Positions 1-62,294 of a DNA stretch of 64,000 nucleotides are shown here, in pieces. The notes under the pieces are model-generated. The model saw only the letters and a program-made list of their open reading frames with translations, made no database searches and had not been told where the DNA came from. The stretch is from the IMG/VR virus record IMGVR_UViG_3300050132_000038, positions 62,001 to 126,000 of that record; one strand, 5' to 3'. Position 1 is the first letter of the stretch; each line of letters opens with the position of its first letter. The translations under genes and the position numbers were made by a program.

Positions 1-9
1 CTATTTACA

Positions 10-417
10 TTAGTGCTGAATAGGAGTGGTCAGCGGAAGTGTTAATGTAATTGATTGACGGAAGACTGGACGCACATAAATGTCCTCACCACGTTCAAGC
101 ACACCATCGACGTGATAACCATTGCAGTACCACACGCCTCTAATCGGATCGCAGCTAACGTCTACAACACGAGGCCAGATCGTGCCTGCACTAGATTGCA
201 GTGGAAGATAACCAGGGACGTGATACAGGCCATCGGCAACAGGAGTTGCTGAGGAGTAACCGATAGTCTGTCCAAGGCTCGGCACACCAGAACCCATCGG
301 CACGTTAGCTACCAGGATGGATGGTGGATCGCCTGGAGGCATTCCACCATTGGTGAGTTCTTGTGCTTGCGCACTGAAGGCTACACCAAGCAGTGCTACT
401 AGTAAGAGTTGCTTCAT
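10..417 (-). CDS. Exported protein (Sec signal peptide, two Cys)
   Basis: N-terminus MKQLLLVALLGVAFSAQA is a classic signal peptide; mature part contains YHVPGY...IWPRVVDVSC...CNGY. Confidence 0.75.
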   Translation of the reverse strand: MKQLLLVALLGVAFSAQAQELTNGGMPPGDPPSILVANVPMGSGVPSLGQTIGYSSATPVADGLYHVPGYLPLQSSAGTIWPRVVDVSCDPIRGVWYCNGYHVDGVLERGEDIYVRPVFRQSITLTLPLTTPIQH

Positions 418-426
418 CGTTGCTCC

Positions 427-600
427 CTACTCCGTAGTTGAGTCCTTAGATGCATCGGCCTCTACACTAAGCTTGGCAACCAGTGCATCAACCTGATCCT
501 GCGTTGCGTGACCTTCTGCACGCGCTTCATCAGCCCGGTCCAGCCACTTTGCGTCTTCATTACCTCCGCTCGGGTCTTCATTACTATTATTTTCAGACAT
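427..600 (-). CDS. Small acidic hypothetical protein
   Basis: Packed ORF, start taken at MSENNS; no motif recognised. Confidence 0.6.
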   Translation of the reverse strand: MSENNSNEDPSGGNEDAKWLDRADEARAEGHATQDQVDALVAKLSVEADASKDSTTE

Positions 601-629
601 GATTAGTTCCTTTATGAGTTTATTCAAAA

Positions 630-1328
630 TTACTTGGTAACAGACTGCGCACGCATTTCCGCATTGGCTTTGATGATAGCGGCGTGTGCTTGAATTTCTT
701 CGGCGGTCTTCATCTGCGGCGTTACCGTCATCAGCACACCCTTCGAGTCCAACAAAGCGAGAGGGCGTTGAACAACGGCTGCTGCTACGGGTGCCGGAGT
801 AACGACCGAGCCAGGAGCAACTGCTTGGCCGGTATCAGGATCAATTAGAGGACGACCGGCTGCAACCCACTCGGCCTTCGTCATTGGGCAACCACGGCGA
901 ATGGTGGCCCCATCTTTGCGACGATCAATAACACCACCCGACACAGAGATCGAATAGCGAATGTCGTCATTGGTACAGAGAAGGGCCATTGCTGCGGAGT
1001 GCTCGCCCATGTTCCATTCTTCACGCGCGTTCTTCAACATCGTGCAATTGGAATCTGTCCAGGTCGAACCAAGGGCTACACCGAACGACATACCGGTCGC
1101 ACCCATCGACGAACTACCCATACACGTATCATTTGAAGAGGTGAGCGAGGGAGCGAATGCCGAGGAGGTTGCGTAGCGAACGGTACTATCAGAAACAGGG
1201 GCGAACAACAGGGAACCACCTTGTGCTGCACTCTGCGTACTTGCATTCGATGCCGTGCTTGCAGTCTGTGCAAAGGCTACAGCTGACGATAGAGAAAGTA
1301 CAGTTGCTACTAGGAGCTTCTTATTCAT
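630..1328 (-). CDS. Exported Cys-containing protein
   Basis: Signal peptide MNKKLLVATVLSLSSAVAFA; core TCMGSSSMG...DSNCTMLKNAREEWNMG...ALLC. Confidence 0.75.
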   Translation of the reverse strand: MNKKLLVATVLSLSSAVAFAQTASTASNASTQSAAQGGSLLFAPVSDSTVRYATSSAFAPSLTSSNDTCMGSSSMGATGMSFGVALGSTWTDSNCTMLKNAREEWNMGEHSAAMALLCTNDDIRYSISVSGGVIDRRKDGATIRRGCPMTKAEWVAAGRPLIDPDTGQAVAPGSVVTPAPVAAAVVQRPLALLDSKGVLMTVTPQMKTAEEIQAHAAIIKANAEMRAQSVTK

Positions 1329-1362
1329 GTTTTCGTCCAATTAAGGAGGGCAAATGTGAAAA

Positions 1363-1396
1363 GAGGTGGATAGGGAACTTAATCCCTATCCACCTC
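1363..1396 (-). terminator. Rho-independent terminator after 1432..2175
   Basis: 14-bp inverted repeat gaggtggataggga/tccctatccacctc followed by TTTT on the - strand. Confidence 0.8.
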
Positions 1397-1431
1397 AGTC
1401 TAGCTAGATGTTACGTGTGAAGCTTTGTTGA

Positions 1432-2175
1432 TTACGGGTTGTTGCTGACTGGGTTGTTGATAAGCGTTGCGCCTGCGCCTTCACCCGTCGTGATAGCACC
1501 GCCGAAGTTGAAACCACCATTCGTGTTAACAGTGATGGTGCTCGGATCGCTAAGAGCTGTACTACCAACCGTCAATCCCGAACCTTGGGTGGTAGCCGTT
1601 GCGCCCCAGGCGTCGCCCGTCAGCGTCGACGTAATATCCGTGGTGGACGTCGAACCGGTGGTCTTGTTTACGCTAGAGCTATTCGTGGACGAGAGGCTCG
1701 TGGTGTAGCTACCACCCTCAGCTGAACCAACAGCCCCACCTTGGTTTCTACCAGCAACAATGTTATTGCCACTGACCAGCGTAATATTACCGGAGCTGCT
1801 ACCGCCGTTTACTGTGGTATTCTCACTGGTGTTGGCGTCAGCCGAACCAGTCGAGACTGCGCTACCCGTGCCTGCGCCCGAGCTGAGGTTCCAGCCGTAT
1901 GCGCTACCGCTATTAGCAATAGTACCGGAGGTGGTTGCTACGCCGCTCTTGCTGATACCTGCCGTCGAGGTAACTGCAGAACTTTCGCTATTGAAAGCTT
2001 GAGACTCGCTCGATCCACCATTGAAAGAACTAAAGCTACCGCTAATCGTGTTAGCAACTCCTGCGCCACCACCAGTACTGGCCGAGACACCAGCAGGAAT
2101 AGTCGAAGGGCTACCTGCAAAAGCCGAAGCTGCGAACATTGCGGAAATAGCTGCGGCGATAATGATCTTGTTCAT
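1432..2175 (-). CDS. Exported Ser/Thr/Gly/Asn-rich low-complexity protein
   Basis: Signal peptide MNKIIIAAAISAMFAASAFA; mature chain has no Cys and very few charged residues. Confidence 0.8.
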   Translation of the reverse strand: MNKIIIAAAISAMFAASAFAGSPSTIPAGVSASTGGGAGVANTISGSFSSFNGGSSESQAFNSESSAVTSTAGISKSGVATTSGTIANSGSAYGWNLSSGAGTGSAVSTGSADANTSENTTVNGGSSSGNITLVSGNNIVAGRNQGGAVGSAEGGSYTTSLSSTNSSSVNKTTGSTSTTDITSTLTGDAWGATATTQGSGLTVGSTALSDPSTITVNTNGGFNFGGAITTGEGAGATLINNPVSNNP

Positions 2176-2325
2176 GTGTGTGATATTCCAAATTGGATTT
2201 TGAATGAAGGTTTGTTTTCTCTACAGCTTACTGCGATCTATACTACGGGTGCTGCTAATCAGTGAAGCTATAGAGTCAAAAGATCTTAATCATTACTTTT
2301 CTATTTGTTGGAATTCGTTACTTGT

Positions 2326-2333
2326 TATTTACA
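2326..2333 (-). promoter_or_regulatory. TGTAAATA putative late promoter upstream of the exported-protein operon
   Basis: Exact motif in intergenic DNA on the coding strand. Confidence 0.6.
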
Positions 2334-2347
2334 GCAGTGAAAAACTT

Positions 2348-2422
2348 TGGCAGGGGAGGAAGGGATCGAACCTTCGCGTGCTAGTGTCAAAGACTAGTGC
2401 CGTACCACTTGGCTACTCCCCT
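2348..2422 (-). tRNA. tRNA-Gln (anticodon TTG)
   Basis: Cloverleaf: AGGGGAG/CTCCCCT acceptor, GCC/GGC D stem, CTAGT-CT TTG AC-ACTAG anticodon arm, GAAGG TTCGATC CCTTC T arm, encoded CCA. Confidence 0.95.
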
Positions 2423-2435
2423 ACTTCATACTCTT

Positions 2436-2443
2436 TATTTACA
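2436..2443 (-). promoter_or_regulatory. TGTAAATA motif directly upstream of tRNA-Gln
   Basis: Exact motif 13 nt before tRNA position 1 and right after the stop of 2444..2704. Confidence 0.65.
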
Positions 2444-2908: not shown

Positions 2909-3310
2909 TTACAGTTGAGCCTCAGAAAACTTTTTACGGAACTCCAGGGGCTTCGAGATACCCAGGAACGGCTCTTGGGGATTACCAGCACCTGCCACAA
3001 CCACCGAACCGTAATTCAAGATGCGACCCATGAAGGTTTGATCCACGCGAATCGTTTCAACTTTTGACAACGGGATCTCGATCACTCTACGACTGATAAA
3101 ACCTTTCTTCGACACCAACCGCTTGTTTGTAATCACCAACTCAGTTGTGGCAAAGTTGCAGAACACCAGCAATAGCAAGATCAAGCCGATACCAAACACT
3201 GGAATAAGGATGATGCCGAGGACGATCATCCAGAAGGAATTCCACAAACTAAGTGATGCGGTGTAGACAACGTGCTCGCCTTGCGTGAGTGTCTTTTCAG
3301 TGTACGTCAT
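2909..3310 (-). CDS. Membrane protein with bacterial PH domain (YdbS/bPH_2-like)
   Basis: TM hairpin followed by ELVITNKRLVSKKGFISRRVIEIPLSKVETIRVDQTFMGRILNYGSVVV. Confidence 0.8.
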   Translation of the reverse strand: MTYTEKTLTQGEHVVYTASLSLWNSFWMIVLGIILIPVFGIGLILLLLVFCNFATTELVITNKRLVSKKGFISRRVIEIPLSKVETIRVDQTFMGRILNYGSVVVAGAGNPQEPFLGISKPLEFRKKFSEAQL

Positions 3311-3319
3311 GTTCTTTAT

Positions 3320-3610
3320 TTACAGGGGGTAATCAGGTGCAGCTGCAAGTATGGCACGGTAAGCAGCTTCCATACTACTGTATCGTCCAGTATGTTCCGC
3401 CTGTTCACAGTGAACACCTGCGATAACCATCTTGTCTGTAGGCTCCAGAGGTACCAACTTCCATCCGGCTAACAGAGCTTGATGCGCACGCCAGAATCGC
3501 TGCAGCACGGCACGTTCAGTAGGACAACCGTCGGCTTCTTTACATACACTGTCGGCACTCTCTGCATCACACGATACACAAGCCTTCGGGAACTCGACAA
3601 CATTGCTCAT
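3320..3610 (-). CDS. Hypothetical phage protein
   Basis: WKLVPLEPTDKMVIAG...AYRAILAAAP phage-type C-terminus. Confidence 0.7.
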   Translation of the reverse strand: MSNVVEFPKACVSCDAESADSVCKEADGCPTERAVLQRFWRAHQALLAGWKLVPLEPTDKMVIAGVHCEQAEHTGRYSSMEAAYRAILAAAPDYPL

Positions 3611-15748: not shown

Positions 15749-18292
15749 TTACGCTGCTTTACGTTTAATGAGGGCCTTCTTAACGGCTACCACTTTCTTT
15801 ACGGGAGCTTCCTCGGCGTCATTGCCCGTAGAACTGGAAGGTAAGCCTAGCATGTCTCTTCGGTACTGAACATTATCGTCCATCAACTTTACAAAATCCA
15901 CCTTATCATCGGATTCGATAGCTTTGATACGTATCACCTTACGAGTCTCTGGATTCATTGCGAGGATCCGCATGAGATTTGCGTCTAGCTCACCCCACCC
16001 TTTAATATGATTTACAAGGACCGTGGAGGGGGCTTTGAACTTCAGCAGTTTCTTCTGCGTCTCGGATACAGTGTCTCCTGTAATCAACTGCCCTTTGTGA
16101 ACTGCATAGAACTCAGGGGCATTTGACACGTACACCATACCCTTCTTGAATAGTTCGGGTAGGTAACGGTAGAATAGGGTTAGCAGCAGACTATTGATGT
16201 GACAGTTACTGGAGACGATACCAGAAGGTAGAATGAAGTTATGATAACGCGGGACCGTCAAACAGTAAACAGGTACAGGCTCCTTCAACTTCTGAATCCG
16301 CATCTTCGACACAGGGGCAAACCCAAGGCCGGTCAGCTTGTCACAGCTCGAGGGATTGCGTGACTTGTTGGACGAGGGAAGGAATACCCGATCGCCAATC
16401 TTCAAGTCCTCTGATGCAACATACACCAGATTATCGAAGTTTGTCGGCTGAGTACGACGACCATACATTGCATTGGTGACCAAACACATCCACTTATGCG
16501 ACATATCCACTTTGTACTTGGTACCTCCGATCTCCAAGGCAACGAGCGTGTCCACATTCTTAACTAGCTCTGCTGTTGCAGGTGCCCATGTCTCTTTAGC
16601 GCCAGTCCACACCGGAACTTCGAAGATGGGAGCTGCTACAGAGTACGGGCCACCGCGGTCTACGGCAGTAAGTTCGTAAATCTCCCGCTCATACTCTGAA
16701 CCATTTATACGAACTCGAATTTTGGTGTCACGCACAAACGGGCCGTCTGGGTCCGGGTCGGCCAAGCAGATGATCTTACCGATAGTCAGCTTCGAGTAGG
16801 GATCACTTGCTTTCACGTCGTAGCCAATTGCTGCCAGAATGTTAATCACTTCCTCTGACTCTAATGCCTTGCCCTTATTATCCTTTAAGCTGTTGAGAAT
16901 TTTCCCGCGAAGTGGAAGCACCCCTTGATATGGAAAACGAGCCTCCTTGGTCGTGCCCCCGGCACTGTCTCCCTCTACTAAGAACAGCTCCCGGTCCTGC
17001 GGTTTAGTCCGACTGTCGAATGCGGCATACTTTGCGGGTAGCCCATTGCGCTTTACCGCGTTGAGCTTGCCTGCTGCCTTCTTCGACATTGTGAACTTGG
17101 TCTTCAACTCATTCATCTGCGTAGCGCGGTCTGCAATGCGCTGAGCCAATGCCTTGTTCTCTTTGAAGAACTTCGTTGTCGCAAGCGTGAGGGCCGTTTC
17201 AAAGTCCTTACCCACTCGATCGTCAGTCAGCTTTGCCTTATCCTGGGAACTGAACTGTGCCTTGTGCAACTTTGCATTCACGAGGCCCACCAAACCTTCC
17301 TTCAAGTCGGCCTCACGGAATACCGGAACCTGCTTGCCGTCCACCTTCTTCGTTTTGATGAATGGCTTCAAGCCTGCATACAGAGCACCCGTTACTGAAT
17401 CAACGTGCTTACCGCCCTGCCCGTTGTTCAAACCATTAGTGAAGCCTCGCACATCACAGCCATCATAGTTTGAGAATGCGACAACCACATCAGCAAGGCT
17501 TGAGCTGTTCTCAAACATCTGACGCTCGCCCTCAGTCTTTAGCTTCAGCATACGCTGGGCTACGTACTCCGTCGGACCCTTCTTCGACAGAAATTGTTTT
17601 GCACCCTTTGCGCTACTTATAGTGATGGAGAACCCAGGGTTGAGGTATGACATAATCTCAGCCCACTCTACCGCCATTGATGCAGGAAATGACTTGGCTG
17701 AGAAGATGGTGGAGTCAGGCTTGAAATGGATCACCGTACCAGATGTAGGGCGCTTACCATTCCACAGCTTAGGTGCTGTCTTAGCCGCAGCAACAGGGGA
17801 CGTAAGTTTACCTTTCTTGAAACCAATCGTGTGCCATTTGCCTTTGAAGAAGGTACACGCGTCGAAGAAGTCAGCCGTGGCATTCGTGCCCTTCGCGCCT
17901 ACGCCGTGCGTGCCCACTGAAATCTTGTAAGCGTCATCACGATATTTGCCTGACGTATGCAATTCCCCGAACACTGCTTGCATAGTGGACATGGTGAAAA
18001 TCTTTTCACCGCTTCCCGTAGTTGCTTCCCACTTCTTAATGCCCTGCGGAATGCCGTGTCCATTGTCCGTCACCCAGTACGAACCGTCTGAGTCAACATG
18101 GAGATGCACCGAGTCGTTACGCCCAGCCAAGTGCTCGTCCAGTCCATTGTCGAGGAGCTCTCGGGCGCAAAGCCATACCCCGGAGGCATCCACACTGCCA
18201 AGATACATAGAGGGGTTTCGGCGGATTGATTCCGGGAATCGTAATGTCTCGATGTGACTGCTATCGTACTCTGCTACCTTCTTGGTTGCCAT
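15749..18292 (-). CDS. gyrB: Type IIA topoisomerase subunit B (GyrB/ParE-like) with intein
   Basis: ELLDNGLDE, DNGHGIP, GTHGVG, LFLVEGDSAGG, PLRGKILN, ADPDPDG...HINSLLLTLF. Confidence 0.95.
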   Translation of the reverse strand: MATKKVAEYDSSHIETLRFPESIRRNPSMYLGSVDASGVWLCARELLDNGLDEHLAGRNDSVHLHVDSDGSYWVTDNGHGIPQGIKKWEATTGSGEKIFTMSTMQAVFGELHTSGKYRDDAYKISVGTHGVGAKGTNATADFFDACTFFKGKWHTIGFKKGKLTSPVAAAKTAPKLWNGKRPTSGTVIHFKPDSTIFSAKSFPASMAVEWAEIMSYLNPGFSITISSAKGAKQFLSKKGPTEYVAQRMLKLKTEGERQMFENSSSLADVVVAFSNYDGCDVRGFTNGLNNGQGGKHVDSVTGALYAGLKPFIKTKKVDGKQVPVFREADLKEGLVGLVNAKLHKAQFSSQDKAKLTDDRVGKDFETALTLATTKFFKENKALAQRIADRATQMNELKTKFTMSKKAAGKLNAVKRNGLPAKYAAFDSRTKPQDRELFLVEGDSAGGTTKEARFPYQGVLPLRGKILNSLKDNKGKALESEEVINILAAIGYDVKASDPYSKLTIGKIICLADPDPDGPFVRDTKIRVRINGSEYEREIYELTAVDRGGPYSVAAPIFEVPVWTGAKETWAPATAELVKNVDTLVALEIGGTKYKVDMSHKWMCLVTNAMYGRRTQPTNFDNLVYVASEDLKIGDRVFLPSSNKSRNPSSCDKLTGLGFAPVSKMRIQKLKEPVPVYCLTVPRYHNFILPSGIVSSNCHINSLLLTLFYRYLPELFKKGMVYVSNAPEFYAVHKGQLITGDTVSETQKKLLKFKAPSTVLVNHIKGWGELDANLMRILAMNPETRKVIRIKAIESDDKVDFVKLMDDNVQYRRDMLGLPSSSTGNDAEEAPVKKVVAVKKALIKRKAA
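16205..16741 (-). mobile_element. 179-aa class 3 mini-intein in GyrB
   Basis: Insert PFVRDTKI...SHKW...VYCLTV...HNFILPSGIVSSN followed by +1 Cys; removing it restores DPDG-CHINSLLL. Confidence 0.88.
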
Positions 18293-50660: not shown

Positions 50661-51617
50661 TTACTCCTTGGTTAGAGTTGGTTGGCAGTAAGCAATTTCT
50701 AAGAAGGCTGCCAAGGACGCCGCGGTCGCCCTAAGTTCTTGCTGTCGCTCTTTAGACTGTCCCGCTAGTATTCGAATCCGTTTTATATTAGGTGCTGAAA
50801 ACGGTTTAACTTTAAATGGGGCCTCGACCTGTAAGGCAATTGCGGTCATAGGGACCTGCTCTAAGTCATCCATGCTATAAATTTTGTGAAGGTAGCCGCT
50901 ATTCTTCTTAGCGGCCCTCTCTACTTTTTCTACAGTAACGATGGCAGGTTTAACTTTCTTAATGACCCGGGACAGGTGCCCCTCAGAGGTTACTTGAGAA
51001 TAGCCGAGCAGATTACATTTCTCGATCTTCCATAGCTCATCTGACTTGTAGTTTATGTAGTGGAAAGCGGGATCAGAATTATTTGCCAGTGTGCCCGCGT
51101 AGAAGGTGTTTCTAAATCGTAATTCTCTGTGCAGGTGTCCAGCTACAGTAACAGCATCACTCTTCTTCATTCCTACCTTAAAGTCCAAGCCTAACTTCTT
51201 TTCAACTTCGGGGACAGCAGCGTGGACTACATTCAGAGCATCGAACATTAGTCGCGCATGAGGCCACGGATTAAAGTTTACGTGAGCTCCGTCTATGTCT
51301 ACCACTTCGGCCCTAGAACTGAAGACGGTAACGTTATGAGCTCTGAGCAGATCTAGGCTACAGGAGGATGCTTCCCGATTGTTAAAGAGATCATGATTAC
51401 CAGCGATGATCCAGAAGCGTAGGTCATTGTACTCGGCAAATAGTTTTCGTAGCTTGCGGACAACGGTAAGGTCACCATCCTCTACAAGGTCCCCGTACTG
51501 AAAGATATTTTGTATCCTCCTCTTTCTCGCAATGTCACAGACGTGAGAAATCCTGAACAGGCGCGATTTCATGTTGGTAGGTTCGAGATGCAGATCTGCT
51601 ATCCCTAGTGCTCTCAT
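50661..51617 (-). CDS. Second SbcD/Mre11-like metallophosphoesterase
   Basis: ADLHL, YGDLVE, AGNHD, AGHLH, YAGTL. Confidence 0.75.
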   Translation of the reverse strand: MRALGIADLHLEPTNMKSRLFRISHVCDIARKRRIQNIFQYGDLVEDGDLTVVRKLRKLFAEYNDLRFWIIAGNHDLFNNREASSCSLDLLRAHNVTVFSSRAEVVDIDGAHVNFNPWPHARLMFDALNVVHAAVPEVEKKLGLDFKVGMKKSDAVTVAGHLHRELRFRNTFYAGTLANNSDPAFHYINYKSDELWKIEKCNLLGYSQVTSEGHLSRVIKKVKPAIVTVEKVERAAKKNSGYLHKIYSMDDLEQVPMTAIALQVEAPFKVKPFSAPNIKRIRILAGQSKERQQELRATAASLAAFLEIAYCQPTLTKE

Positions 51618-52921
51618 TTCGTTTGGTCCACGTAAGTAGGTTTAGAGAAGTCGAGCTTCAGTGTGGCAGCGGCCTGGGCTAATCTCTTCGACTCCCGCGT
51701 TTTAGTCAAGATACCTGATAGCTCTTCCAAGTATAACGCCGCCCCCTTCGCAGATGATAACCACCGCTTAGTATGATCCTTCGTATTGGTCAACAGCCCT
51801 GCCTGCCCCTGCAGCATAATCAGATGCGCGTCAGGTGAAATGTCTAAACTTAGGTTCAATGATTCCGCCCACGTTACTAACCGAGGATCCCACGCAACCT
51901 TCTTCTTCCCTGCGTTAGTCTTGTACTCCTCTTCCCATAGCTTCATCATCCCTCGATGCTGTAGAGCAAATGGATTGTCTACAGTCACCATGTAGGATAA
52001 GCACGTACGCTCTATAGCATAGGTCATCAACGCTTCCACCGCACCTTTCCAGCCACGCTCAGGATACTCCCGCTTCACGTAGTCATACAAACCTTTGATA
52101 GTAGGCTTGGCCCCTAAACTCCAATAGTTCTTTAGATAGTAGTTACTCACAGTAAGATCGAACCGCAATCGTTTCTCCAGGTCCTGCTCCTCTTCACTAC
52201 CCATTGCCTTCTCGTTATCACGCTTCTCCTGTGCTTTATTATAAAGACACAGATGCATTAGCTTGTTACCCTTCCCTAACTTATCGCCTTTAGCATAGAT
52301 CGCCAAGGCTATTGAATCATCGTACTGATCCCCTACGCTACGCTTCATAGCTAATTCTTGCAACAGTGATATGTAACGTTCTCCGGTGTGCAGCCGCGTC
52401 TCATACATAAAATACCAACGATCAATCAATTCTCTCATTAGCTTTTCATTCTTCAATGGTGAACTATACTGCGCGAACGTTACTGAATGAATGTTGATAT
52501 TCCCAATCTTTACCTGCTGCGTTAGCCGGGTAACGTCTACACCCTTCTTACCCAGGAACTCTAGTACAAAGTAGAATATATCCTGCACCTGTGTCCGTAG
52601 CTTCAAGTTACCGAACGTATTGTCCCCACTGAACACTGATGCTGGATTAGCTAACACATTGAAGAACCATGTGGATCCTGCACGACCATCCTGTCGTAGT
52701 GTTACTGTTATTGCTGAACCTAGCTTCTTGAACTTCCCTGGGTTCATAATGAATATGATTCCCCCATCCTTATCGCGCAGTCCTCCATTCTTTTCCATTA
52801 CAGCCATTAGCTTCTTACTTTCCTTATCAGAGCATTCAACACCATTACTCTCGAAGGTCGTATCATCAACATCTAGGTCTGTTCCCATATTGATATTGTC
52901 CACCATTGCGTATGTCTTCAT
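51614..52921 (-). CDS. Rep_trans / phage gene II-X-like replication initiator homolog
   Basis: ANPASVFSGDNTFG, LCLYNKAQEKRDN (resembles the catalytic IYNKKQERKDN of pT181-family Rep), LRFDLTV. Confidence 0.65.
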   Translation of the reverse strand: MKTYAMVDNINMGTDLDVDDTTFESNGVECSDKESKKLMAVMEKNGGLRDKDGGIIFIMNPGKFKKLGSAITVTLRQDGRAGSTWFFNVLANPASVFSGDNTFGNLKLRTQVQDIFYFVLEFLGKKGVDVTRLTQQVKIGNINIHSVTFAQYSSPLKNEKLMRELIDRWYFMYETRLHTGERYISLLQELAMKRSVGDQYDDSIALAIYAKGDKLGKGNKLMHLCLYNKAQEKRDNEKAMGSEEEQDLEKRLRFDLTVSNYYLKNYWSLGAKPTIKGLYDYVKREYPERGWKGAVEALMTYAIERTCLSYMVTVDNPFALQHRGMMKLWEEEYKTNAGKKKVAWDPRLVTWAESLNLSLDISPDAHLIMLQGQAGLLTNTKDHTKRWLSSAKGAALYLEELSGILTKTRESKRLAQAAATLKLDFSKPTYVDQTK

Positions 52922-53222: not shown

Positions 53223-53230
53223 TGTAAATA
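53223..53230 (+). promoter_or_regulatory. TGTAAATA promoter starting the + strand block
   Basis: Exact motif 28 nt before the ATG; its divergent partner is at 52978-52985 on the - strand. Confidence 0.65.
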
Positions 53231-61701: not shown

Positions 61702-62294
61702 CTACTTGGTTTACTTCCGACCTTCACTTAGGTCACGAGCCTATTCTCGAATTCACCAACCGTAGGGCGCAGTGTCCGTTATCCGCAATGCGGCCTGCTA
61801 TTACTGAACACGATGAGTGGGTTATCGGAGAGCTTAACTACTACGTCAAGCCTACAGACGAACTGTACATCCTAGGTGACGTATCGTTTCACAAGAAGTG
61901 GCATTCAGGATCTCTCATTGAGTCGATCAACGGTAAGAAGCATCTAGTGTTAGGCAACCACGATCAACGTCTGGCTGACTTCTATCAAATGTCAGGACTG
62001 TTTGCTTCCGTTAGCATCCTCTCGGAGTTCAAGCTTAATAGGAAACGGGTTATCTGCTGTCACTACCCAATCGCCCAATGGAGTGCTGGCCACCACGGCT
62101 CTTGGATGTTGCATGGGCACACCCACGGAGACTTTGATTACGAGAAAGCCAACCTTGCAGATAAACGAATCTTGGACGTAGGCTTCGACAATGCCTATAG
62201 GGTACTGGGCACCCATCGCCCTTTCTCCTTTGAGGACATTACTATACTATTTGAAGATCGGGTATCGATCGAACACCACGGGAAGGCAGACTAA
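61698..62294 (+). CDS. Calcineurin-like metallophosphoesterase
   Basis: FTSDLHLGH, LGDVS, LGNHD, CHYP, LHGHTH, DVGFD. Confidence 0.9.
   Translation: MTTWFTSDLHLGHEPILEFTNRRAQCPLSAMRPAITEHDEWVIGELNYYVKPTDELYILGDVSFHKKWHSGSLIESINGKKHLVLGNHDQRLADFYQMSGLFASVSILSEFKLNRKRVICCHYPIAQWSAGHHGSWMLHGHTHGDFDYEKANLADKRILDVGFDNAYRVLGTHRPFSFEDITILFEDRVSIEHHGKAD

Follow-up and report, generated by a model that had tools for sequence, protein, structure and literature searches.

What does a large phage do with an operon of small proteins built for export? The question is raised by a locus in a stretch of 64,000 nucleotides (the window: positions 62,001 to 126,000 of IMG/VR record IMGVR_UViG_3300050132_000038), which is part of a 218,861-bp large-phage contig with topoisomerase II subunits, RtcB and one tRNA-Gln. 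Four genes, here called A, B, C and D and all encoded on the minus strand, make up the operon. An initial annotation made from the sequence had proposed that they specify a fibre or matrix system of the host surface, and the features it described are present where it had placed them (Table 1). Apart from those of lysis, phages seldom have genes for exported proteins, and such genes are often a sign that the host surface is being manipulated, be it for exclusion, receptor masking or envelope stabilisation. The answer favoured here, held tentatively and at somewhat less than an even chance, is that A, B and D constitute a self-contained exported module in which an abundant β-sheet subunit, A, and the minor disulfide-type partners B and D form an envelope-associated assembly.

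The claim that three of the four co-oriented genes carry Sec signal peptides was borne out. All three N-termini open with M-[NK]-K, run through a hydrophobic stretch and end in AFA before G, AFA before Q or AQA before Q, so that each has the basic N-terminal residue, the hydrophobic core and the A-x-A type site of a Sec-exported protein. Signal peptides were judged by inspection together with a crude filter, which picked A, B and D alone among the approximately 130 non-overlapping open reading frames (ORFs) of the window; their clustering is therefore not due to chance. In the alignments of all three families the signal peptide is a conserved feature. Around the operon lie small genes without known function together with genes of replication type (ligase, topoisomerase II), and no recognisable lysis genes or structural block are found near it in the window.

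The same trio is found well beyond this phage. Loci were fetched from bacterial genomes (27) and from IMG/VR (39), and the order A-B-D recurs in about 60 of the fetched loci, on IMG/VR phage contigs as well as on chromosomes of Oxalobacteraceae, Polaromonas and Ramlibacter. In 61 of 70 loci B is immediately followed by a homologue of D, and in 40 loci it is immediately preceded by a signal-peptide-bearing protein of 220–300 residues that consists to 55–77% of Ser, Thr, Gly, Asn and Ala. In the closest relative, locus L071, A is 78% and B 67% identical to the window copy. The co-occurrence of the three families elsewhere, on which the initial annotation had made its proposal depend, is thus seen, with gene order kept, in dozens of loci from phages and bacteria, and its mention of hypothetical proteins with TCMGS and WPRVV motifs in Betaproteobacteria was correct, as bacterial homologues were found there. 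The bacterial carriers comprise Noviherbaspirillum, Actimicrobium, Herminiimonas, Polaromonas, Ramlibacter and a few other Proteobacteria. Their copies are flanked by housekeeping genes, for example gmk, rpoZ, spoT and greB in Actimicrobium, so that they do not count as prophage cargo.

Cultured phages carry parts of the module. A long form of B with a G/S/N-rich N-terminal region occurs alone in the Ralstonia phages phiRSL1 (ORF070) and RSP15 (ORF122), in Achromobacter phage JWDelta (gp25) and in Pelagibacter phage HTVC023P (gp45), and the pair of A and B is present in the Achromobacter phages phiAxp-2 (where B is gp051) and vB_Ade_ART. All B homologues of cultured phages are annotated as "hypothetical protein", and most represent B alone or A with B, lacking both D and a further gene, E, that is described below. 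They surfaced only with a more typical B (P0108) as the query; in the phage database neither megablast with the region nor tblastn with the window's B gave a match. No literature with a bearing on these genes was found for phiRSL1 ORF070, the vB_Ade_ART genes or YkuD in jumbo phages. In the pelagiphages HTVC023P (L076:3001-6056) and HTVC115P (L077:2887-5237), B adjoins an acidic or Thr-rich protein of about 460 residues and lies near a membrane/coiled-coil gene. In HTVC023P this neighbour of B has a signal peptide and an M15 peptidase gene of endolysin type is also nearby, and in HTVC115P B itself has a C-terminal hydrophobic segment.

The suggestion that the system is host-derived has become doubtful. 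In the maximum-likelihood tree of B the bacterial copies fall into a few tight clades (12 Oxalobacteraceae, 7 Polaromonas-like and 3 Alphaproteobacteria) among far more diverse viral lineages, an unrooted tree by which the direction of transfer is not proven. The G+C content of the module (0.53, and 0.50 at third codon positions) is phage-like, which rules out recent capture from a high-GC host and makes a recent host origin unlikely for the window copy.

Protein A had been described as a Cys-free, nearly uncharged polymer of small residues, and its mature chain matches that description with 20% Ser, 18% Gly, 16% Thr, 11% Ala and 9% Asn (74% in sum), 5% Asp, Glu, Lys and Arg taken together, and no Cys; large hydrophobics make up about 17% of residues. 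The protein evolves fast, and a word-based homologue search returned only four matches (80, 78, 47 and 35% identity). The family alignment keeps the motifs N-[VT]-S-T-G-x-G-x-G-x-A and A-G-T-N-Q-G at their positions, which identifies A as a true family, and no tandem sequence repeats are seen in it. Pfam gave no match for A or for any of 41 members of the A family, even at E = 10. When supplied with the 41-sequence alignment, AlphaFold models A with a predicted local distance difference test (pLDDT) score of 71, rising to about 80 over residues 30–160, and a predicted template modelling (pTM) score of 0.60. The model is a meander of eight to nine antiparallel strands of 17–27 residues with Gly-rich turns; in most strands the large hydrophobics mostly share a face, and amphipathicity is weak. 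The expectation of an ordered β structure rather than a disordered chain is thus upheld by this model, the one of a β-solenoid is not, as the strands form a meander of long hairpins. Look-alikes of A, B and D in the ESM Atlas are all unnamed, and a weak lead to HfaD for A (0.81) fell below the tool's own reliability line.

Protein B is composed of the signal peptide, a short S/T/A/N-rich stretch, a conserved domain of about 90 residues and a clade-specific C-terminal extension ending in a helix. The core reads DTCMGS ... W-T-D-x-N-C-x-M-L-K-N-A-R ... W-N-M-G, in which D-T-C-M-G, W-T-D-x-N-C, K-N-A-R and W-N-x-G are invariant, as are four Cys across 92 homologues. AlphaFold predicts it as a β hairpin followed by three helices (pLDDT 80–90 over residues 90–160). 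The family is large, with 284 homologues in a word-indexed search; a profile search, clustered at 50% identity, extends it to 2,886 clusters (E ≤ 1e-3), of which 1,678 reach E ≤ 1e-10, and none carries a Pfam domain. Its match to phrog_20531, a family of unknown function, is the sole one obtained for A to D among Pfam, NCBIfam, PHROGs and PADLOC, and Pfam returned none for 10 long B homologues. The B profile found nothing among PDB sequences, a Foldseek search with the B model found nothing in PDB (best E 2.4), and in BFVD the model retrieved only uncharacterised members of the B family. In long homologues the core is preceded by 100–200 residues of S/T/N/G sequence resembling A and followed by Ala/Pro/Glu repeats. 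Many B homologues (for example L062, L047, L010, phiRSL1 ORF070 at L074:2242-3327 and JWDelta gp25 at L075:2419-3351) have a C-terminal motif (Y)-T-D-P-[IY]-[VI]-R-x-R-[ML]-G-L-P-x-L; the clade of the window's B is devoid of T-D-P-[IY]-[VI]-R-x-R-[ML]-G-L-P and has instead an extension of about 70 residues that ends in a helix.

Protein D has a core of about 70 residues, G-S-G-x-P ... D-G-L-Y-H-V-P ... W-P-R-V-V ... R-G-E-x-I-x-V-R-P, with two invariant Cys; its profile had no match among PDB sequences. B and D are hence both Cys-containing exported proteins, as had been stated for them, and the invariant Cys of the two families would fit periplasmic disulfides. The D of the window ends in ...TLPLTTPIQH, with no Lys, a stop codon inside the next copy of the motif TGTAAATA (see below) and without the C-terminal tail of most homologues. 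Gene C, which had no family match in Pfam, NCBIfam, PHROGs or PADLOC, is specific to the lineage of the window phage: neither L071 and L073, its closest relatives, nor any other locus has it, and there B and D are separated by 0–30 nt.

When all ORFs within 4.5 kb of B were clustered for about 65 loci, only A, B, D and one additional family, E, proved recurrent. E has about 115 residues and directly follows D in 43 loci (14 bacterial, 29 viral). It matches Pfam YkuD (PF03734) in five of five sequences, below the gathering score (E 3e-4 to 0.05), and in PDB it comes closest to B. subtilis YkuD (E = 0.03). The residues invariant in 24 sequences include His68, Gly96, Cys97 and Asn99, with the YkuD His and G-C motif kept, and four extra Cys are conserved. 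A second YkuD-like paralogue exists in the phage loci L035:3901-4434, L045:9050-9310 and L059:3529-3879; in L035 it carries a normal signal peptide and does not have the extra Cys of E.

The presence of E goes along with the C-terminus of D (related loci such as L001:8590-9433 and L062:6400-7225). In company of E, D ends in a Pro/Val-rich spacer and ...V-T-[RH]-K-K-P-L-G in bacteria or ...V-P-V-K-K-[KI]-G-E in phages; without E, it has no tail or another basic tail containing Cys. The Lys-Lys tail is found in 37 of 57 dereplicated D-bearing loci; tail and E occur together in 35 loci, the tail without E in 1, E without the tail in 1 and neither in 18. The Cys-containing tails constitute a third type, basic with a Cys near the C-terminus (such as KPKKQICN or LVCTK), and are always without a YkuD gene (L071:6734-7219, L073:1422-1901, L038, L040, L058, L060, L063). 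Lys-Lys ends are known from the Dickeya proteins Lpp (VRTYKK) and OutB (VRTTKK), which are linked by them to meso-diaminopimelate through L,D-transpeptidases (PMC12729407). Export of E as a stop-codon read-through fusion with D was ruled out, because the frame relation of D and E varies among loci. The window phage is a reduced form, having no tail on D, an extra gene C and no E that could be found: the E profile had no match in six-frame ORFs of the window or in 9 kb of downstream sequence from the source contig, a search that did not extend to the remainder of the 219-kb genome. Polaromonas has the same A-B-D form without E and tail.

The regulatory signals of the operon bear on the amounts in which its products are made. 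The window holds 21 copies of the motif TGTAAATA where 2 would be expected; all of them point in the direction of the genes and most lie 20–60 nt before start codons, and the motif is also enriched in L071. The extended form (C)TGTAAATA is approximately tenfold enriched in the window, frequently overlaps the preceding stop codon and is probably this phage's own promoter element; it resembles the T4 late promoter TATAAATA. One copy stands before A and the next at the end of D, which gives A-B-C-D the look of a single unit. Both this upstream motif and the strong hairpin directly behind A had been noted initially and were confirmed. The stem of the hairpin is perfect, with a folding free energy of −28.3 kcal/mol (z = −5.2), and a consensus terminator scan missed it since its T run has four T, not five. 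L071 has a hairpin at the same site after A whose stem differs in sequence and is base-pair compensated. Counting perfect stems of at least 8 bp, a hairpin lies 3' of A in 18 of 38 dereplicated loci (47%) compared to 1.3% of random windows of the same loci, a control that consists of such windows and not of other intergenic regions. The hairpin probably either terminates transcription in part or stabilises the A transcript at its 3' end. Its recurrence after A supports a surplus of A over B and D, and together with the compensated stem in L071 it lends weight to the earlier proposal of over-production relative to the downstream genes. At the position of the tRNA-Gln that precedes the operon in the window, L071 has a tRNA-like sequence (not from a tRNA finder).

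From these parts a course of assembly can be proposed. A would be made in excess, with the hairpin behind it attenuating transcription or stabilising its message, would be exported by Sec and would then fold or assemble into long-hairpin β sheets. B, as a new four-Cys periplasmic domain placed after an A-like low-complexity stretch, may serve as cap, nucleator or anchor of the A sheet, and D may be a second minor, disulfide-bonded adaptor. Most versions add the proline- or valine-rich spacer and Lys-Lys tail of D and a dedicated mini YkuD-fold protein, E, a combination that points to covalent coupling of D to peptidoglycan, or to its release from it; the window phage would represent an untethered form, as would Polaromonas. 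The outcome would be a layer or fibre of protein, placed in the periplasm or on the wall, that alters properties of the infected cell's envelope, with stability, phage exclusion and stress tolerance as candidates. The A-B fusions and the strict A-B-D order argue for physical cooperation of the proteins. A broader version, which we consider doubtful, would see in the module a phage-spread envelope-building system, in which A polymerises in the periplasm or on the wall, B caps or anchors it and the whole is, in most versions, fixed to peptidoglycan by way of the Lys tail and the signal-less E; phages would use it to remodel the envelope of the cells they infect, and a domesticated form would exist in some Burkholderiales.

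Several observations speak against such an assembly and its attachment. From the single sequence, ESMFold gives A a pLDDT of only 0.27, and no residue of the AlphaFold model exceeds a pLDDT of 90. With no outer-membrane exporter in the module, a fibre on the surface would depend on machinery of the host. A signal peptide is missing from E, whose N-terminus aligns to the YkuD strands β1–2 and to the mature part of the signal-bearing paralogue, and at the position Cys+2 it has Asn in place of the Arg of L,D-transpeptidases and the Ala of the amidase DpaA (PMC10653827); a role in periplasmic transpeptidation is thereby rendered uncertain. The link between tail and E, with 8 candidate pairs on the best tree, has few independent contrasts behind it, 3 of 3 on well-supported (starred) branches, p = 0.25. 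As the window copy has neither E nor the tail, the peptidoglycan part does not directly apply to it. Lastly, the sequencing runs that match the source sequence are peat DNA metagenomes only, with no RNA run listed.

Four other explanations have to be weighed against an envelope-associated assembly. The one that ranks highest among them, and that we still regard as unlikely, is that nothing assembles: A would be a soluble, largely disordered periplasmic polymer, acting as hydrophilic filler, as protectant against freezing or drying or as decoy, and B and D would be unrelated periplasmic factors that are merely co-regulated. The low ESMFold confidence is in line with this, as is the fast evolution of A, in which composition and a few motifs are conserved. 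Several bacterial carriers are moreover cold-associated by name, for example Actimicrobium antarcticum and Polaromonas, which belong to cold or dry habitats. However, AlphaFold with the alignment renders A all-β at a pLDDT of about 80 over residues 30–160, the conserved motifs sit at fixed positions, and the strict gene order and the A-B fusions would be hard to reconcile with unrelated factors. Next in rank, and distinctly improbable, is a secreted functional amyloid of curli or Fap type with A as extracellular subunit and B and D as nucleator and chaperones. The operon logic of major subunit, attenuator and minor exported proteins is that of such systems, and A is rich in polar-zipper residues and predicted to be β-rich. 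On the other hand, none of 41 A homologues has a Curlin or Fap match in Pfam, no CsgG/FapF-like channel or other neighbour is conserved, A has no tandem repeats and is modelled as a hairpin meander instead of a solenoid, and with the Lys tail and the YkuD gene most versions point to the peptidoglycan side.

Alternatively, A could be a β-hairpin pore former that oligomerises to a large barrel and permeabilises a membrane, for example in lysis or killing, assisted or regulated by B and D, a possibility to which we assign a small probability, behind that of an amyloid. The sole Foldseek matches of the A model in PDB are pore-state hairpins of perforin, the membrane attack complex (MAC), gasdermin, lysenin and aerolysin, with probabilities up to 0.93 and E-values down to 1e-4; the weak amphipathicity of the A strands would also agree with a pore, and so would the position of B near a membrane/coiled-coil gene in HTVC023P and HTVC115P and near the M15 peptidase gene in HTVC023P. 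Nevertheless, these matches have TM scores ≤ 0.24 and root-mean-square deviations of 30–40 Å, as the long hairpins alone match, and thus express a likeness of hairpins and not of folds. The large hydrophobics of A are too few for a lipid-facing barrel, the chromosomal copies in bacteria come without an obvious immunity gene, and the window operon does not lie by recognisable lysis genes. By far the least credible reading would make the proteins plain parts of the virion, for example fibre or decoration proteins. Low-complexity proteins rich in Gly, Ser and Thr do occur in phage fibres, and D has a weak match to a phrog annotated "virion structural protein" (E = 0.57), yet A, B and D bear cleavable signal peptides, chromosomal copies exist outside prophages, and the operon's surroundings are not a structural block. 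The remainder of the probability falls to something else.

Table 1. Positions of the operon, its signals and other features in the window.
Feature	Position	Strand	Description
Gene A	1432-2175	-	247 aa; Sec-type signal peptide and 226-aa S/G/T/A/N-rich chain; presumed major subunit
Gene B	ORF 630-1340, likely ATG at 1328 (630-1328)	-	232 aa, the form called on the source contig
Gene C	427-627	-	66 aa, acidic, without signal peptide, between B and D
Gene D	10-417	-	135 aa; signal peptide and small conserved domain
Promoter-like motif TGTAAATA	2326-2333	-	about 150 nt upstream of A
Stem-loop	1363-1396	-	between A and B; 14 bp, loop of 6, then UUUU
Next copy of TGTAAATA	2-9	-	directly after D, overlaps D stop codon, marks unit end
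tRNA-Gln, anticodon TTG	2348-2422	-	immediately upstream of operon, between two TGTAAATA copies
Second upstream copy of TGTAAATA	2436-2443	-	precedes tRNA-Gln
Further TGTAAATA sites	2906-2913, 3317-3324, 53223-53230		examples in the window
Membrane protein	2909-3310	-	133 aa
GyrB/topoisomerase II-like ORF	15749-18292	-	847 aa
Rolling-circle initiator-type ORF	51614-52921	-	435 aa

Three other genes of the window deserve mention. For the membrane protein listed in Table 1, the Pfam matches precomputed for the source contig show a bPH_2 (bacterial PH) domain. In the GyrB/topoisomerase II-like ORF there is a weak match to Intein_splicing at residues 665–695, below the Pfam threshold, which may reflect an intein remnant or insertion. 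The third ORF has an N-terminal domain of the Phage_CRI/G2P-type rolling-circle initiators (E 4e-5), which is unexpected for a 219-kb tailed-phage-like genome.

The three families of the module are unannotated anywhere, yet B runs to thousands of clusters across metagenomes, cultured phages of Ralstonia, Achromobacter and Pelagibacter, and free-living Burkholderiales. Should A indeed assemble, it would be a new bacterial or phage β-sheet material with anchoring proteins of its own, and the Lys tail together with a minimal YkuD enzyme would, if the proposal is true, be a new, genetically self-contained pair for coupling proteins to peptidoglycan or uncoupling them. Noviherbaspirillum, Actimicrobium and Polaromonas aquatica are cultivable carriers.

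Among known systems, curli (CsgA/B/C/E/F/G) and Fap (FapA-F) come to mind, in that the module likewise pairs an abundant, low-charge, Cys-free and β-prone exported subunit with minor exported proteins in an operon that favours the subunit. It differs from them in having no similarity of sequence or fold, no imperfect repeats, no solenoid and no outer-membrane channel or lipoprotein; B and D are new disulfide-type domains, and most versions add a peptidoglycan-type tail and a YkuD gene. Curlin repeats (PF07012) are absent from A and the 41 family members, Pfam and NCBIfam gave no match to FapC-type repeats, B, C and D have no Csg matches in the same two collections, and neither CsgG/CsgE/CsgF nor a FapF-like barrel recurs in the about 65 neighbourhoods. 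With no similarity of A to CsgA or FapC either, the initial comparison with curli and Fap does not hold as kinship. Compared to the nucleator CsgB, B has an A-like N-terminal region rich in Ser, Thr, Asn and Gly that is long in many homologues, a likeness to A that is seen in composition.

The D of most relatives, in turn, recalls Lpp and OutB with their enzymes LdtA-C or Ldt03/84, as it combines a Lys-Lys tail like VRTYKK or VRTTKK with a linked YkuD-fold gene (PMC12729407; PMC10653827). In contrast to Lpp and OutB, D is not a lipoprotein or membrane protein, and the Lys of the relatives' tail lie 2–3 residues from the end; the window D has no Lys tail, and no YkuD gene was found in the window or 9 kb downstream. 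E departs from L,D-transpeptidases and DpaA in its size of about 115 residues, the missing signal peptide, the Asn at Cys+2 and the four extra Cys. With the pore hairpins of MACPF/CDC proteins, gasdermin, lysenin and aerolysin the A model shares antiparallel hairpins of about 20 residues rich in Ser, Thr and Gly, whereas it has no globular head domain, is too hydrophilic for a membrane-spanning barrel and reaches no TM score above 0.24. The anti-phage defence profiles of PADLOC match none of A, B, C and D nor the D and E of relatives. The phage proteins of phrog_20531, by contrast, are true homologues of B, with the same DTCMGS/four-Cys core, signal peptide and low-complexity N-terminal region.

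Taken together, the module fails the repeat, exporter and homology tests for curli and Fap, and the analogy with Lpp and its transpeptidases is limited to relatives with an atypical enzyme, so that it is filed under no known system: many large phages and some Burkholderiales chromosomes share it in conserved form, and no named family includes it.

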